Of a stretch of 64,000 bases of DNA, positions 6,020 through 13,148 are shown piece after piece. This DNA is from Zygnema circumcarinatum SAG 698-1b (taxonomy: Eukaryota; Plantae; Zygnematophyceae): positions 558,001 through 622,000 of the forward strand of contig CM074810.1 in assembly GCA_037447605.1 (NCBI GenBank), written 5' to 3'. Within the stretch, counting starts at the first letter, position 1, and every line of letters begins with the position of its first letter. The notes beneath the pieces are model-generated. The model saw nothing but the letters and a program-made list of their open reading frames with translations, was not told the origin of the DNA and did not search any database. The translations under genes and the position numbers were made by a program.

Positions 6020-6940
6020 TACAGTACTGTACAGTAGTGCTGACTACTGGCCCACCCGGATCTGGAACAGATCTCACGTCCGTACGGGTATATCATTTCA
6101 ACGGTCCAGATCGGTACGTACACCAAATTCGCAAATCGCAGCCGTCCGATGTCCTTTGCTGTTTAAACGTGCGATCGACGGATTTCCTCGCTATTCAACA
6201 CCACGTGGTGTAACCTCAGCCGTCCATTTTCCTCCTCATAGCCTTTGAAGGTCTTTTGCCAGTTTGCATGTGTGATCGACGGCTTCCCTTGCACCGAGGG
6301 TCCACATGGCGTGATCACTGCCGTCCGTTCACCTCCGATGGCCCCTTCACGACTTCTACCCTCACCGCATAGAAGTGGCGCGGGCGAGGGCGAGGGCGGG
6401 GAAGGCGGGGCACAGAATGGCAGGGTGTCGGCCCGCGGAAAATTTAGGGTTACGGCTGCAGGAGCAGGAGGGAGAGGGAGAGGGAGAGGGAGAGGGAGAG
6501 GGAGAGGGAGAGGGAGAGGGAGGGAGAGGATATGGCGGCGGGAAGGAGGGAGCAGGGAAGGGATGGGAAGGGATAAGGAAGGAGAGGGGAGGGGGGGCAG
6601 ACAGGGAAGGGAAGGGTAGGTTTGGATTAGGGTTAGGGTTTGAGAAATGTTTAGAGGTAAGGCTAGGGTTAAGGTTGGAGTCAGCTTCGCAAGCCTTGGG
6701 GCTAGCAGGAAGCGGAGGGCGGGGTCTTTTTTGGGCGGACGGTGGCGAGAAGCGGGCGGAGTTTGGAGGTAGGTGGAGGCCAGTGGTAGTGGTAGTGGTA
6801 GTGGTATTGGTATTGGTAGTGGTAGTGGTAGCTGCTCCTCTTTGGAAGGAGGGAGGCGTGCGGTTCGTCAAGGAAGAGCGTGCAGGGGGTGAATGTAGTG
6901 AGTGAAGTGAAGCTGCTCTCGGCGAAAAGATCAAAAGAAA

Positions 6941-9900
6941 ATGGAGAAAACTCGCTGGATGTACGGAGCGGCTCTCCTCGGCATCTTGCTATCAGGTTTG
7001 GTGCAGAAAACTAGTTTTTGGTCCTTGAGCATTGTTTGTGGGGCGTTGTTTGCGGCTCCACGTGGCATCATTCCATGCAGTCTCTCCCGTTTGACAGGTG
7101 GCTTCATGCTGGTATATATGTCAACTGCAGTTCTGTTACGCCCGACTGTAACAGTGACATGCTACAGTCGCATGTAGAGTGTTGCTTTCAGTTGCGTGTG
7201 CCGTTAGACGCAAATAGCTTTACGGTACCGTGCATTGCAGGGTATGTCGTTGACTGTTAGGAGTTACGATACCCGTAAAACCGAACAGGCTGAGAATTTG
7301 AGAAACCAGTAGTTTCTTAATTCTCAATCTTATTGAATAGGGTTGAACTTTGAACTCTCGAGGTCGAAACTTTTTCGATTTAAGGAAGCGGAAAGTTTTA
7401 AACAAAAAATTCTAAACTCAGTTGGTAATGTCGCACGTGTGGATTCCACTTTTTGCCACGTTGGTTCCGTGCGATTCGAGGGATCCGGTTAACCCGGACC
7501 CCAGTTTTGCCGTACGACTCTTCCCGTGAGAAGATCAACAATTTCTCTACGGAACTCTGGGTCCACGCGTTTTGCGATCCGCTTAAATCTCATTGTTGAT
7601 CGGTGAACCCAAGGAAAACTCAAATTGAACACGAACGATAATTTATTGTTCAATGTGTAATCGGTTCTCCATAAAAATTGTATCGAGAATAATAAATAGG
7701 AATTCATTTCTCAAATGGAATCGTGTTCACAAACATAGGGTTTTTTTTGAGAAATTGATTCTGAAATTTTTTTTTGGCGAAGCCAAAATCTTCAATTTTT
7801 TTTTCTCAACCTGTTCGGTTCTACGGTAGTGCATTTTCTATGCTGGCATGGGACGTTTTGATTTTCGATTTTCTCGAAGCTGACACTGTTCTCTTCCTCT
7901 CTCAATTCTCTTTCCCTCTCCTCTCTGCCTCTGCAGCGGCAGCAATCAGCTCCCATGGGGCTCTTCAGATGCCGGTTCTTAAGGCCGGGGATAGTTCCTC
8001 TTTCGGCACGCTTCAGGCGACGAAGACTATATACCTGCAGCTGGATTTATCCGCCTGCACCCCACAAATGATTCTTAATGTTGAGGCTTTGGATGTGAAC
8101 CGCAAAAGTGAGCTTGTCGGCACGGATGTGAAGGGTTCGGCGACTCTCATGTTGATGGCAAATGTGCTCGGGGAGAGGCCGGTAGCCATTCCGCTCGGAA
8201 ACGGACTCTGGTCTTATAATAACGGAACGGTAACGGACAGTGCAGGTGGGTATTGTGGAGCGAATCCGCTTTGCTTTGCAGTTCTATTTGAAAATGTGTG
8301 TTGGGGGCTTTGCTGATCTCCGCTCTGTATGTCACTTTTACCTGATTACGGTTCGAGCCCAGTGGTCTTTTATACTTCAAAAAAATTCTAATCTCCAAGA
8401 GCTTCAACACGGATCTCAAAGAATTCAATGGAGCTGCAATCCTTTTGCAGAATGCACAAGCCTGCAATTTCAGGAACATTTCGGCACATGCATCATAGGT
8501 AGTAGTTGATTGTGTTTTGCATTCAGCTTGGTAGACTCTCTCGCGCTGAGCCAAACTTGTTCTGTTGATGGAATCGTGCTTAATTGTTTTATCTTCTTTC
8601 CAATATCTATGTCTATTCTTATTCCCATACGTTCCTTTTCTCGTTTGCACCTTGGCTGAAATTTTGTATGGTCTGTTTGCTGCAGCGTACAAATTGGCAA
8701 GGGCTTACCATCTCCTTCACCTCAACCTGTCGCAGTACACAGTCAGCGCTCCGTGGACAGTTGGCCTCCTTAATGATGCGACCTGGGCGAAGCGAGATGT
8801 CAATTATTCAATGAGGGCATGGTGTACTGGTTAGTGCCCCATTTTGTGCAACTTCCTTTGCATCTTGATTGTTTGCATCTTGATAGTTTCAGAGCTCCAA
8901 CGATTTGTGTTAATGAGTATCCTACATTGTGTCGCTACTTTTCAGATACTCCCTCCTGTCCAAGGGACTGTAGTGGTCTCGGAAATTGCTCGATAACGGG
9001 AGTCTGTGACTGTGAACTTGGACGCGGTGGTAAGGGCTGCGCTTCAAGTAAGTTTTTTCTGCGTAAAGTCCTCATTTTCCCAGCCTTTTAGGCCCTTGCT
9101 GCTCACTTTTGTCCGTTTCTATGGCCTTAGCGCTGGTTTTTGGAATCGCTCGCTGTAAAAGAGAGCAAACCTTCTGCAATGGAAGGTCTGTTCGAAGGAG
9201 GATTGTCAATCGTTTGCGGCCTGTAAACTGAAGCACTTGTACCGCAATTAATCACAAAACTGTTGTCTTAAATCGTTTTAAATTTCAACCACCAACTTTT
9301 TTACGGGTTGTGTTGACTCAGTATTTCTCATGATTCTCTTGTTGCTTTGTGTTTCAGCTGTGGACGCTTTACCAGATGGAATGGTCTTTGACAGAGTTCT
9401 TGCAGTTGACGAATGGAACTACTTCTCATATGATGTAGGTCACCTCCCTCCCCTCCCCTCCTCCTCCCCTCCTCCCCTCCCCTCCCCTCCCCTCCCCCTC
9501 CCCCCTCCCCTCCCCTCCCCTCCCCTCCCCTCCCCTCCCCTCCCCTCCCCCCTCCCCTCCCCCTCCCCCTCCCCTCCCCTCCCCTCCCCTCCCCTCCCCC
9601 TCCCCCTCCCCTCCCCCTCCCCCTCCCCCACCCCTCCCCCTCCCCTCCCCTCCCCTCCCCTCCCCCTCCCCTCCCCTCCCCTCCCCTCCCCTCCCCCTCC
9701 CCCTCCCCCTCCCCTCCCCTCCCCCTCTCCTCCCCCTCCCTCTCCCCCTCCCCCTCCCCTCCCCTCCCCCTCCCCCTCCCCTCCCCCTCCCCCTCCCCCT
9801 CCCCTCCCCTCCCCTCCCCTCCCTCCTCCCCTCCCCTCCCCTCCCCTCCTCCCCTCCCCTCCCCTCCCCTCCCCGTTTACTGCATCGTCTGCATCTTTCA

Positions 9901-12900
9901 TTTCACCTCCTCTCTCAGTCTGATTCCCATCTCGATCTCTCCTGCTTTGTTCCTTTTGCAGCTTGGAGACGAAAACCAGTCCCTCCTTGTGGAGCTGTGG
10001 AGAGAGCGTGGCGATTCTGTTCTCTTTGTAAAGAGGCGAGATGAGGGCTTTGTGCCGTATGGGGTGCCGAATGTGTTCGATTTTGCGGCGCATGCAGACG
10101 CAGTCAGTTTCAGGGAGCGGTTGGATTACCATCACGTGCTTGTGAACGAAGCAAGCAGCGATATGGTGGTGGGAGTTTATAACTATGGGGTCGAACTACA
10201 GGAAGATGCGGTCTACAGCATCAGTGCACGCTCAGCTCCAAGTAAGTGATTATTAAGTCATTATTTTTATTTATTTTCTTATTTCTTCTCGTAGCTTTCA
10301 ACCTTTTGTTCGTATGTAGTACTGTTTGGCTTAGCAAGGGATTCTCAGACACGGCACCCAATTTAGTTCCCAATTTCAGAGCATCAGGCATTTGGGGTTA
10401 AGCTGAAACCAAATTTCAAATTTGTGGGTGTATGGATTTTTCTAGAAGGTGATGAGAGGATGCATTTAGCATTTTTAATTTTTCTTTTATGCTTGTGAAA
10501 ATAAGAAAGAAAAAAAAAAGGAAAAAAAGTTGTCAGCGATTTTCTCAGTCCGCTCTACGCATTAATACAGAAAGCCGCTAATGACACAGAATTGTTGTTA
10601 TCATTATGTTTATTTCATTATGGAATCCCTTAATGCAGGCGGTGAACTGGGTATTCTATGTCCCAAAAACTGTTCTTATCCCAATGGCGAATGCGGAAGT
10701 GATGGGAATTCAACCCTTTGTTTCTGCAATTCCGGCTATGCTGGCCGATACTGTGAAGGAAGTAAGCAGTCCTAAACTCGGCGCACTTTGTATGGCTAAT
10801 GCCCTGAAATAAAAAATGAGTAGTGAGTTTCTGGAGGGATTATGCACTGTGTTGAAAAGTTGTACTAGTTTTGTTCGTACTTCGAAAAAAACAAGTGCAA
10901 CAAAGTAATTTTTTTCTCAGATTATGGGAGGGCATGCAACTTCTTTCATGTTCTTATCATTCCTTTTGTATTTTTTTGTACTCATGTTTGCAGGCTACAC
11001 TGTGGCAAGCCTTGACACTCCTTTTGAGGGAGTGTTGCAGCCTGGGGAATGGATGTATGTGGAGTACACATTCAACGAGCAGTCTAATACAGTAGTCATT
11101 GGGTGGGTCTTGTTCCCACTCCCTCTCTCCTCCCTTTCCTTTCTCCTCCTCTCTGCTCCCTTACTTCTCCTTGATCTCCGCATCGTATCTTATTGGCCGT
11201 CTCCTCATCCCCAATTTCCCTCTCCCGCTCCTCTCTCCTTGCTCTCCTTTATCTCTTTTAATCTGAAGAGAGTGAATCTGTGGGTGCCTTTCTTCGGCCT
11301 CTCTTTCTAAGCAGTATTGAGACACCTCCCTCGGCCTTCATCATTTCCACATTTTCTTGTCAGATTCTGTTAAATTAGATCTCATTCTATCCCCATCTTT
11401 CGGAGACTATTTATTCTACTGTTGTTGTAGGTTCTATTCTATTTTGGTTATTTGATAGCTCCCCTGTTCACATGTGCAGGTTTGAACGCGAAGGGGGGCA
11501 GGCCACCCTTGTAGCAAAAGCAGATGGAGTTCCGACTTTCTCCGATAACTTGTACCGGCTTGCATCCCCTCCAAGCAATGCTTCACAGCGCAGTATTTTT
11601 AGCTTAAATTCAAGCGAACCCTTGCATGGAAAATTCGTATTTGGGGTCTACAACAAAAACTACCGTGCACATGGGCCCTGTCATTTCTCTCTCGACTTCT
11701 CTCTCCAAGAAGGTACGGTCTAAATAAAAGTCAGCGTACCCAATTCGCTCCTTTCAAACCTGCAACTCAATTGTGCAATTTTCAGTCTTTTGTAGTTTCT
11801 TACGAGGTGCTTAGAAGTCTTCCGTACTTATAGTCTCACTTATTCAGGGCTTGGGTTTTTTTTTTTTTTTTTTTCCTTACTCCAGGTGAGCTGAGTCTAT
11901 TCTCCAGCGGCCTTTTTATAGCTGTTTTCTTGACAGTTGTGGCCTCCCTCTCCATCTGTCTATGTCTCGGAGTTTCTCGAATTGTTATCGTTTATCGTCG
12001 CCATGTGGAAAGCAGGAATCCAGGAAATGTGAGTGAATCAGCAGACTATCCCCTAATATACTAAATGTGCCTCTTAATTATAGCCCAAAAATGAAAAAGC
12101 TCAACACTCAGTTCTGCAATTAATAAACAACTCTTGCTCACACATGGAGCGGAGGACTTGCAAGTGATATGTTATATGGTCCCAAGATTCGTCTTTGCAC
12201 CCGTAAGACTATTGTAGTTTTGAAGCTCTATTTTGAGCTGACATGAAAAGCAGATCTGGTCTATGCAGGGCGGTGGTGGAAGTGTGGGTGAGAAAGGCAT
12301 CGATGCTTCTATTATTGCCGCGTTTCCACTTGTCACATATGTGAAGGGCGGCTCTACAACCCCAGATGATGCACAGTATGTACTCTACATCACATCACTT
12401 CCGCACTATTTGCTGCATTTTCTGCGAACGATCCGGCTAATGCTTCATGTTCACCGTTTGAGGAGTTCTTGGGAGTGGAGAATTATCCGTGGGGTAATCA
12501 TGCATTTCGTTTTCTTTCGTCGTTATTGTCACTCTTTGCAGTTGTGCGGTATGCTTGGGAGACTATGAAGAATCGGATATTCTTCGAAAACTGCCAAAGT
12601 GTGAGCATCGATTCCATGTGGACTGCATCGACGCGTGGCTACGCTCCCATTCTACTTGCCCCTTATGTCGACTGTCCTTACAATCAGCCGCAGCTTCAGA
12701 GAGCCCTCAAGTAGGGCTTCCAGTTGAAATTCCTCATATTCTAACTGTTATCGCACCCCTTTCCTCTGAAATCTCTTCACCTGACGTCCATCCTTTGAAC
12801 CGCCCCACATCTGCACTAGTTTCGAGCTCTATGGGTTCTTTTGAAGGAAGGGAAGAAGAAGGTGAGAGGATTGTATCAAGCCTGGAATGCATCTCTGCTG

Positions 12901-13148
12901 GAGATGAAGAGGAGAAGTTAAGGTTTTCACTTCCCACTGGATTGGGATCGTTAGGGTTTCTCCGAGAGGGAGAAGGAAAGAAAGTTGAACTTGTAGCGTT
13001 GGGAACACATCAGTATGGAGAGCCGCATGCGGAGGAGATGAAGGGTGGTGTGGAGGGCTCATCCGCACCACTAGAGAGGGAGGAAGTGAGGGAGAGGGAG
13101 AGGGAGAGGTTGAGGGAGAGCGAGAGGGAGAGGGAGCAGACGAGGTAG
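6941..13148 (+). CDS. Type-I membrane protein of 762 aa: signal peptide, beta-rich/EGF ectodomain, one TM helix, ATL-type RING-H2 E3 ligase
   Basis: 12 GT-AG exons with all phases consistent, 2289 nt in total: 6941-6995, 7937-8245, 8686-8829, 8946-9047, 9358-9434, 9962-10241, 10639-10761, 10994-11102, 11480-11712, 11886-12028, 12269-12375, 12542-13148. EGF1 [28 protein letters not shown]; EGF2 [32 protein letters not shown]; [24 protein letters not shown]; GLD-like [12 protein letters not shown]; [38 protein letters not shown]. Confidence 0.9.
9441..9875. repeat. (CCCCT/CCCCCT)n microsatellite in intron 5 of the EGF-RING gene
   Basis: Directly visible; it explains the spurious Pro-rich and Gly-rich ORFs here. 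Confidence 0.95.

Follow-up and report, generated by a model that had tools for sequence, protein, structure and literature searches.

The window analyzed here is a 64,000-nucleotide (nt) stretch of the genome of the alga Zygnema circumcarinatum SAG 698-1b (GenBank assembly GCA_037447605.1, contig CM074810.1, positions 558,001 to 622,000 of the forward strand), and all coordinates are those of the window. Positions 6941-13148 look like eukaryotic DNA with introns and carry, on the forward strand, a gene for a predicted receptor-like membrane ubiquitin ligase, in which a large modular ectodomain is joined through a single membrane helix to a RING-H2 domain of the ATL type. Twelve coding blocks were anchored, and all GT/AG pairs no more than 15 nt from each boundary were enumerated for combinations that preserve the open reading frame (ORF). 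Many splice combinations do so; selecting the strongest donor and acceptor for each intron gave a 12-exon model with a start codon at 6941, a stop codon at 13146-13148, and 2289 coding nt that encode 762 residues, all introns being GT-AG. This model reproduces the phase-consistent 762-residue ORF proposed in a preliminary description of the window, and the domain order proposed there also held: signal peptide, module 1, EGF repeat, module 2, EGF repeat, module 3, helix, GLD-like motif and RING-H2. We found no second copy of the gene elsewhere within the 64-kb window, and the open frames on the opposite strand are by-products of simple repeats.

The exons follow the domains closely. Exon 1 (6941-6995) holds the start codon and a signal-peptide-like hydrophobic segment and ends in phase 1. 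Module 1 (residues ~29-170), a jelly-roll beta sandwich, occupies exons 2 and 3 (7937-8245 and 8686-8829) between phase-1 introns, and exon 4 (8946-9047; phase 1-1) encodes the first EGF-like repeat (residues 171-203, with cysteines at 174, 178, 184, 190, 192 and 201). The second module (residues 204-325), predicted to be a jelly roll resembling PPC and collagen-binding domains, is encoded by exons 5 and 6 (9358-9434 and 9962-10241); the second EGF-like repeat (residues 326-363, cysteines 330, 334, 341, 350, 352 and 361) by exon 7 (10639-10761; phase 1-1); and the third jelly roll (residues 364-478), homologous to module 2, by exons 8 and 9 (10994-11102 and 11480-11712). Phase-1 introns thus bound every unit of the ectodomain, whether it is made of two exons (the modules) or one (the EGF repeats), a layout of jelly rolls and EGF repeats known from exon shuffling in animal extracellular proteins. 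The sole membrane helix (~residues 485-513) and the basic stretch YRRHVESR behind it lie in exon 10 (11886-12028), and exon 11 (12269-12375) encodes a glycine run and the 15-residue GLD-like motif (residues 536-550). The last exon (12542-13148) encodes the 42-residue RING-H2 domain (C562-C603; 12543-12668), with canonical ATL spacing, and an acidic C-terminal tail of ~160 residues (12669-13148) that is poorly conserved; the tails of relatives do not align with it. Its final ~25 residues (RERERE...) come from a simple repeat of GGGAGA type and therefore look like a translated microsatellite.

Whether these exons belong to one gene was judged chiefly from relatives. The nearest, P0001, is 49% identical (E 0) over residues 1-658, in an alignment that begins at residue 1; it is an uninterrupted ORF of 801 residues on contigs of 3.7-4.4 kb that four sequencing runs yielded. 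These contigs match exons 2-12 in order at ~70% nucleotide identity, and since the window gene has eleven introns, they are most simply read as transcripts. Further full-length members derived from transcripts include one from Pyramimonas (MMETSP) and one from a Trinity assembly. The Zygnema gene can be aligned end to end, from the N-terminus to the RING, with nine relatives, and the exon joints pass through this alignment without breaks. For the liverwort Marchantia polymorpha we rebuilt the exon structure of Mp1g22670 from its locus and mapped its introns and those of the window gene onto a shared alignment. Each of the nine Marchantia introns coincided with a window intron in phase and in place (within three alignment columns), the window gene having two more. 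The shared introns include those at the joins of module 3, helix, GLD-like motif and RING, and the first intron also has the same place and phase. By these comparisons the locus is one intact gene.

The alternative is that the 762-residue product is an artefact that joins the gene of a secreted protein with EGF repeats and jelly rolls to that of a neighboring short ATL. In favor of this, the Zygnema gene model was drawn from genomic sequence, and an in-frame ATG in intron 1 (~7841) makes alternative starts imaginable. However, the introns that would need to hold a second promoter, between module 3, helix, GLD-like motif and RING, measure just 173, 240 and 166 nt, with matching phases, and the same fusion is found in relatives on intron-free contigs or in transcriptome-derived records. 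Introns of the annotated Marchantia gene span the same joins of ectodomain, helix and RING, and the RING is terminal in 17 of the 18 full-length relatives scanned; the exception, from Spirogloea (P0010, 559 residues), is apparently truncated. We therefore consider an artefactual join highly improbable, and the single gene of the preliminary description stands against separate ectodomain and ATL genes. The scan set aside a 1327-residue Closterium model (P0006), in which a lipid-kinase domain accompanies a copy of the module, as a probable merged gene model. Closterium models of 1204-1554 residues (P0006 and P0073 from sp. NIES-65, P0005 from sp. Naga37s-1) carry a module copy together with a PI3/PI4-kinase domain or ~400 extra N-terminal residues, and are probably merged gene predictions rather than true fusions.

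Two details of the gene model concern alternative ends and joints. The intron 1 ATG at ~7841 is in frame with exon 2 (7841-7936) and would give an alternative hydrophobic N-terminus. We rejected it as the start: Marchantia intron 1 has the same place and phase, and the N-terminus of P0001 matches exon 1. An alternative promoter may operate there. At intron 5, the stronger donor (GAT/GTAGGT, the slash marking the junction) gives the spliced text ...FSYD/LGDE, with a one-residue gap against P0001, and an alternative pair at 9438/9969 uses weaker sites, reads ...SYDVDE, yields 761 residues and leaves no gap against P0001. From the sequence, either the 762- or the 761-residue splice may be the one in use. 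A ten-residue segment of the module quoted in the preliminary description must be corrected here, as it reads one codon into the intron.

We compared the three modules of the ectodomain with one another. Local alignment of module 2 with module 3 scored 70, against 26 +/- 4.5 for shuffled sequences (z 9.7; 0 of 500 shuffles reached 70), and hhalign with family alignments joined the two with a probability of 99.4% (E 5.8e-21). The internal duplication suggested earlier for modules 2 and 3 was thereby borne out; module 1, for which no such claim had been made, proved homologous as well, to module 2 at E 3.5e-13 and to module 3 at E 1.7e-9. BLASTP of exon 6 against exon 9 alone returned no alignment, the similarity emerging just with whole modules or profiles. 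Because hhalign links all three pairs, the ectodomain is one module three times over, and by this profile similarity the three jelly-roll modules share a common origin. The triplication is old, since modules 2 and 3 differ in the positions of their internal introns and all relatives have the triple layout.

The two repeats between the modules each have six cysteines in EGF spacing, and their profiles match EGF repeats. As single exons they scored weakly in Pfam (EGF1 with EGF_Teneurin at E 0.022, below the cut-off; EGF2 with EGF at E 0.012), but EGF_Teneurin exceeded the cut-off in the relatives P0016, P0010 and P0004. With the family profile, EGF2 matched a Notch1 EGF repeat at E 2.3e-7 and EGF1 matched mastigoneme EGF repeats at E 3e-12. 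Profile searches of Protein Data Bank sequences matched these EGF parts and nothing else, and a Pfam scan of single exons gave no match for the beta modules.

The fold of the modules was approached through structure prediction. AlphaFold2 was run on the corresponding segments of P0001 with family alignments of 24 sequences, and the module models were compared with known structures by exhaustive structural search. The span of module 2, EGF2 and module 3 was modelled with a mean predicted local distance difference test score (pLDDT) of 90.1 and a predicted template modelling score (pTM) of 0.85, and that of module 1 and EGF1 with 85.7 and 0.82. Module 2 was closest to the PPC domain of a Bacillus collagenase (5sv5; Z 11.9, 2.2 Å, 99 of 105 residues aligned) and to the collagen-binding domains (CBDs) of ColG (1nqd; Z 11.7, 2.0 Å, 96 of 111) and ColH (3jqw; Z 11.5, 2.0 Å, 99 aligned). 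Behind these came the lysozyme inhibitor PliG (Z 11.2, 2.8 Å, 102 aligned), the C-terminal jelly roll of Tk-SP (Z 11.2, 2.5 Å, 95 aligned) and p24 GOLD domains (Z ~10, namely 10.2 and 9.8; 2.3-2.6 Å, 89-96 aligned). The top match of module 1 was the SIDT1/2 ectodomain (Z 11.2, 2.7-2.9 Å, 116-119 residues), with the ColG CBD at Z 9.9, the PPC/CBD set at Z 9.6-9.9 (2.2-2.5 Å) and GOLD at Z 9.2 further down; module 3 matched PirA and GOLD at Z 8.9-9.6. We conclude, with high confidence in the models, that the modules are predicted to fold as jelly rolls like those of PPC and collagen-binding domains, as the preliminary description had expected of them. The Pfam PPC family (PF04151) did not match any window exon, and its best score in a relative (P0020, 16.2 bits, E 0.02) lay below the cut-off of 25.9.

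One feature stands out from the common fold. Module 2 has a conserved insert, modelled as a pair of short helices (consensus GVP..D[FY]..AD..SFR.R.[ND]YH), and module 1 has an equivalent (T..D..G[YF].L.RPYH); module 3 lacks the insert. We infer that this shared insert of modules 1 and 2 is the likeliest functional site of the ectodomain. Nine N-x-S/T sequons were found in a scan of residues 1-480.

Signal peptide and topology were judged from hydropathy and charge. The membrane helix reaches a maximal Kyte-Doolittle mean (19 residues) of 2.76 over residues 487-505, and basic residues follow it. The RING-H2 domain at residues 562-603 has the spacing C-x2-C-x15-C-x-H-x2-H-x2-C-x10-C-x2-C (regular expression C..C.{15}C.H..H..C.{10}C..C), which is the numeric ligand spacing of the canonical ATL RING-H2, and exon 12 matched Pfam zf-RING_2 at E 2.5e-14 and zf-rbx1 at E 6e-10. 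The RING-H2 with ATL spacing that had been read from the sequence earlier is thus supported by both pattern and profile.

ATL proteins have been defined by a 42-residue RING-H2 with the spacing of the canonical domain, a helix toward the N-terminus and a GLD motif of 12-16 residues between the two (PMC3161093). Non-ligand residues also characterize them: ligand 2 is followed by Leu, ligand 6 by [I/V]D-x-WL and ligand 7 by Pro, while Phe precedes ligand 5 and R-x-LP stands one residue ahead of ligand 3 (PMC3161093). All of these residues occur in the Zygnema protein (CAVCL, RKLPKC, RFH, CIDAWL and CPLC), and its helix lies N-terminal of the RING. Compared by eye with that published description, the GLD-like motif is 15 residues long, lies 26 residues before the first RING cysteine and opens with G-I-D rather than G-L-D; in relatives it is kept as GL/GI-D/E...P. 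The eight RING ligands do not vary among 18 relatives, nor do the Phe, Trp and Pro or an Arg after the last Cys. This invariance, of ligands, of the Trp and Pro that contact the ubiquitin-conjugating enzyme (E2) and of the Arg, is consistent with selection on E2 binding and on ligase output. Judged by spacing and residues, the cytosolic half is of ATL type. What departs from the published description is the rest of the protein: ATLs were reported to have no other recognizable domain and an N-terminal region that is absent or some tens of residues long (PMC3161093), whereas here ~480 residues precede the helix.

The same layout was found in many green lineages. A phmmer search with exon 6 of 1.84 billion representative proteins returned 50 relatives. 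Members came from Chlorophyta (Cymbomonas, Pyramimonas, Bryopsis, Ostreobium, Botryococcus), from streptophyte algae (Mesostigma, Chlorokybus, Spirogloea, Closterium) and from liverworts (Marchantia polymorpha with Mp1g22670, M. paleacea, Riccia fluitans), as well as from many metagenome and sequencing-run contigs. Colinear full-length relatives with a terminal RING-H2 span roughly a dozen green lineages (Cymbomonas, Pyramimonas, Bryopsis, Botryococcus, Mesostigma, Chlorokybus, Spirogloea, Closterium, Marchantia and Riccia), so the family is old and widespread. In a maximum-likelihood tree a group with 96/96 support united the window protein with P0001, the Trinity transcript, Spirogloea, Closterium and the liverworts, and the Chlorophyta, Mesostigma and Chlorokybus fell outside it; the gene tree fits vertical inheritance and an origin of the window in or close to the Zygnematophyceae.

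No moss or vascular-plant member was found in searches of low sensitivity at that distance (the phmmer E-value of Marchantia is already 8e-4), so absence from those plants is not established. Word-index searches retrieved P0001 alone with the 18-sequence alignment and with P0001 residues 40-490, and Marchantia and Riccia alone with Marchantia residues 60-560; these near-blank results reflect the method and are no sign of absence from mosses or vascular plants.

In public sets the members are named 'hypothetical', 'RING-type domain-containing' or 'EGF-like domain-containing', and the window's own 762-residue protein was not found in protein collections. A description of the family was not found in the literature on EGF plus RING-H2 proteins, algal ATLs, RING repertoires or Marchantia genes, in a search whose coverage mostly excludes subscription journals, and the main RING repertoire paper makes no mention of EGF. 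The ATL survey covered land plants from moss upward, without algae or liverworts (PMC3161093), and the family would have escaped it for that reason. The preliminary description had allowed that the architecture might belong to an already characterized, widespread family: widespread it is, through Chlorophyta, streptophyte algae and liverworts, but we found no characterization of it. From the sequences compared, the receptor-like ATL-type layout is conserved from marine green algae to liverworts, in proteins that are already public and that form an apparently undescribed family.

We consider it probable that the gene encodes a type-I single-pass membrane RING-H2 ubiquitin ligase whose outer part binds a partner and whose RING ubiquitinates either the ligase or a membrane protein bound along with it. 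A glycosylatable part of ~460 residues would lie outside the cytosol and the RING inside, to judge from the signal peptide, the sequons, the basic residues behind the helix and the need of the RING for cytosolic E2s. In this mechanism the partner of the jelly-roll/EGF part would be a component of the wall or matrix, or else another membrane protein, bound by its outer part; the RING would recruit an E2 and ubiquitinate itself or the co-bound protein; and ubiquitination would set the endocytosis or degradation of the latter. PA-TM-RING ligases (RNF43/ZNRF3, GRAIL and the plant RMRs) work in this manner and are the precedent for the model. The membrane in which the protein works may be either the plasma membrane or an endomembrane.

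Several points weigh against this mechanism. The Zygnema gene model and the ligase activity are predictions from genomic sequence, and topology was read from hydropathy and charge. The fold was modelled on P0001 rather than on the window protein, and Pfam PPC scores stayed below threshold throughout window exons and relatives (best E 0.02). The jelly roll is moreover a common fold, and its matches here (C-terminal domains of proteases, the SID-1 ectodomain, GOLD and PliG) are without a single shared function, so that no ligand can be read from it.

Two other roles could be served by the same architecture. The protein could be a sorting or quality-control receptor of the endomembrane system, its ectodomain binding cargo in the lumen of the endoplasmic reticulum, Golgi or prevacuolar compartment and its RING controlling the trafficking of receptor and cargo. 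The PA domain of plant RMRs and the GOLD domain of p24 proteins bind cargo, and the p24 GOLD matches are good (Z 10.2 and 9.8 for module 2, 9.2 for module 1), though tied with or under those to PPC/CBD and SIDT. RMR, RNF13 and GRAIL, proteins of endosomes or vacuoles, have the same order of signal peptide, ectodomain, membrane helix and RING-H2; sequence does not discriminate between compartments, and we identified no sorting motif in the C-terminal tail. Surface and matrix proteins are the more typical setting of EGF repeats. The family also occurs in wall-less or scaly unicellular prasinophytes, where wall sensing is less obvious. We regard a sorting role as unlikely overall, yet deserving of real weight.

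Alternatively, the three jelly rolls could anchor the cell to a matrix polymer, such as hydroxyproline-rich glycoproteins or a polysaccharide, the RING tuning only the turnover of the anchor itself. Clostridial collagen-binding domains bind collagen helices, and the collagenase PPC/CBD domains are the closest single-domain matches (Z 11.5-11.9, 2.0-2.2 Å for module 2; Z 9.6-9.9, 2.2-2.5 Å for module 1), with a porphyran-binding carbohydrate-binding module also matched (Z 8.5). The predicted rigidity of modules 2 and 3 around EGF2 (pTM 0.85) is likewise that of tandem binding domains. Against this, identity to the PPC/CBD-type matches is just 9-14%, and the family-wide invariance of the E2-contact residues argues for a selected ligase output over mere anchoring. 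An anchor that regulates only itself is thus the least plausible of these roles, and in our judgment very unlikely; partner binding coupled to ubiquitination remains the reading that we prefer.

That reading can be set beside several known systems. With the ATL family the protein shares the 42-residue RING-H2 ligand spacing, the non-ligand residues, the GLD-type motif between helix and RING, and a helix N-terminal of both; it differs in the ~480 residues of signal peptide, three jelly rolls and two EGF repeats before the helix, where ATLs have tens at most. The PA-TM-RING proteins (plant RMR; RNF13, GRAIL/RNF128 and RNF43/ZNRF3) likewise have a signal peptide, an extracytosolic domain, a single helix and a cytosolic RING in the same polypeptide, and the working principle, binding outside that directs ubiquitination inside, is probably the same. 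However, no PA domain was matched by Pfam in the window exons or in 18 relatives; the predicted fold is instead a PPC-like jelly roll, and the ectodomain is repetitive and three times the size. The preliminary description was therefore right to separate the architecture from that of PA-domain membrane RING ligases. Bacterial PPC and clostridial collagen-binding domains (5sv5, 1nqd, 3jqw) would share the eight-stranded jelly roll almost throughout its length (Z 11.5-11.9, 2.0-2.2 Å over 96-99 residues of the P0001 model), but with 9-12% identity and PF04151 below its cut-off; here the fold sits on a eukaryotic membrane ligase and carries the conserved helical insert that is missing from the bacterial domains.

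Other likenesses are looser. Reelin repeats (A-EGF-B) and the CUB1-EGF-CUB2 unit of MASP, C1r and C1s also flank one EGF with two beta-sandwich domains, and Foldseek matched them at E 3e-7 and 2e-6. We rejected membership in either group, as TM-scores of 0.22-0.33 show that the domain arrangement differs; the sequence relation is confined to the EGF part, and those proteins are secreted and carry no ligase. The SID-1/SIDT ectodomain has tandem jelly rolls and is the best match of module 1 (as above); it spans modules 2 and 3 at ~190-200 residues, but superposition of the two domains is poor (root-mean-square deviation >9 Å), and SIDT proteins act as multi-pass channels or lipases and have neither EGF nor RING. 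MEGF8 or Attractin together with MGRN1 pairs an EGF-containing surface protein with a RING ligase whose ubiquitination targets are membrane receptors; the likeness is of logic only, since that system is split over two chains, and both its ectodomain modules and its RING protein are of another kind. The parallels drawn earlier with RNF43/ZNRF3 and with MEGF8-MGRN1 remain analogies. A plasma-membrane sensor role may hold for the window protein, whose ligand binding and ligase activity are predictions.

Among animal ligases, those that carry ectodomains (RNF43/ZNRF3, GRAIL) play a key part in regulating how abundant receptors are. In plants, membrane-anchored ATL ligases number in the hundreds, yet almost none of them, to our knowledge, is known to sense anything outside the cytosol. 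The locus therefore offers a specific candidate for signalling that leads directly from the outside to ubiquitin in algae and early land plants, and the Marchantia polymorpha orthologue makes the family testable, as knock-outs and localization are routine there. A more speculative possibility, to which we give little credence, is that the ATL-defining cassette of helix, GLD motif and RING-H2 predates land plants and first served as the cytosolic half of this receptor-like protein, the hundreds of short ATLs of vascular plants descending from such a gene by loss of the ectodomain. If this were true, ATLs would have originated as surface or lumenal receptors, and the liverwort gene Mp1g22670 would be the ancestral form that survives.

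Some minor observations concern the surroundings of these genes. On Marchantia polymorpha chromosome 1, Mp1g22670 adjoins an inositol polyphosphate kinase (IPK) gene on the opposite strand (L005 6703-7047). Within the window, intron 5 contains a simple repeat of ~430 nt (9440-9875) of the CCCCT/CCCTCC type, whose GGGAGA-type complement appears just upstream of the gene (6500-6560) and at the coding 3' end (13090-13140). Short runs of N (assembly gaps or masking) occur at ~16800 and ~19970, in a stretch rich in proline-coding simple repeats.

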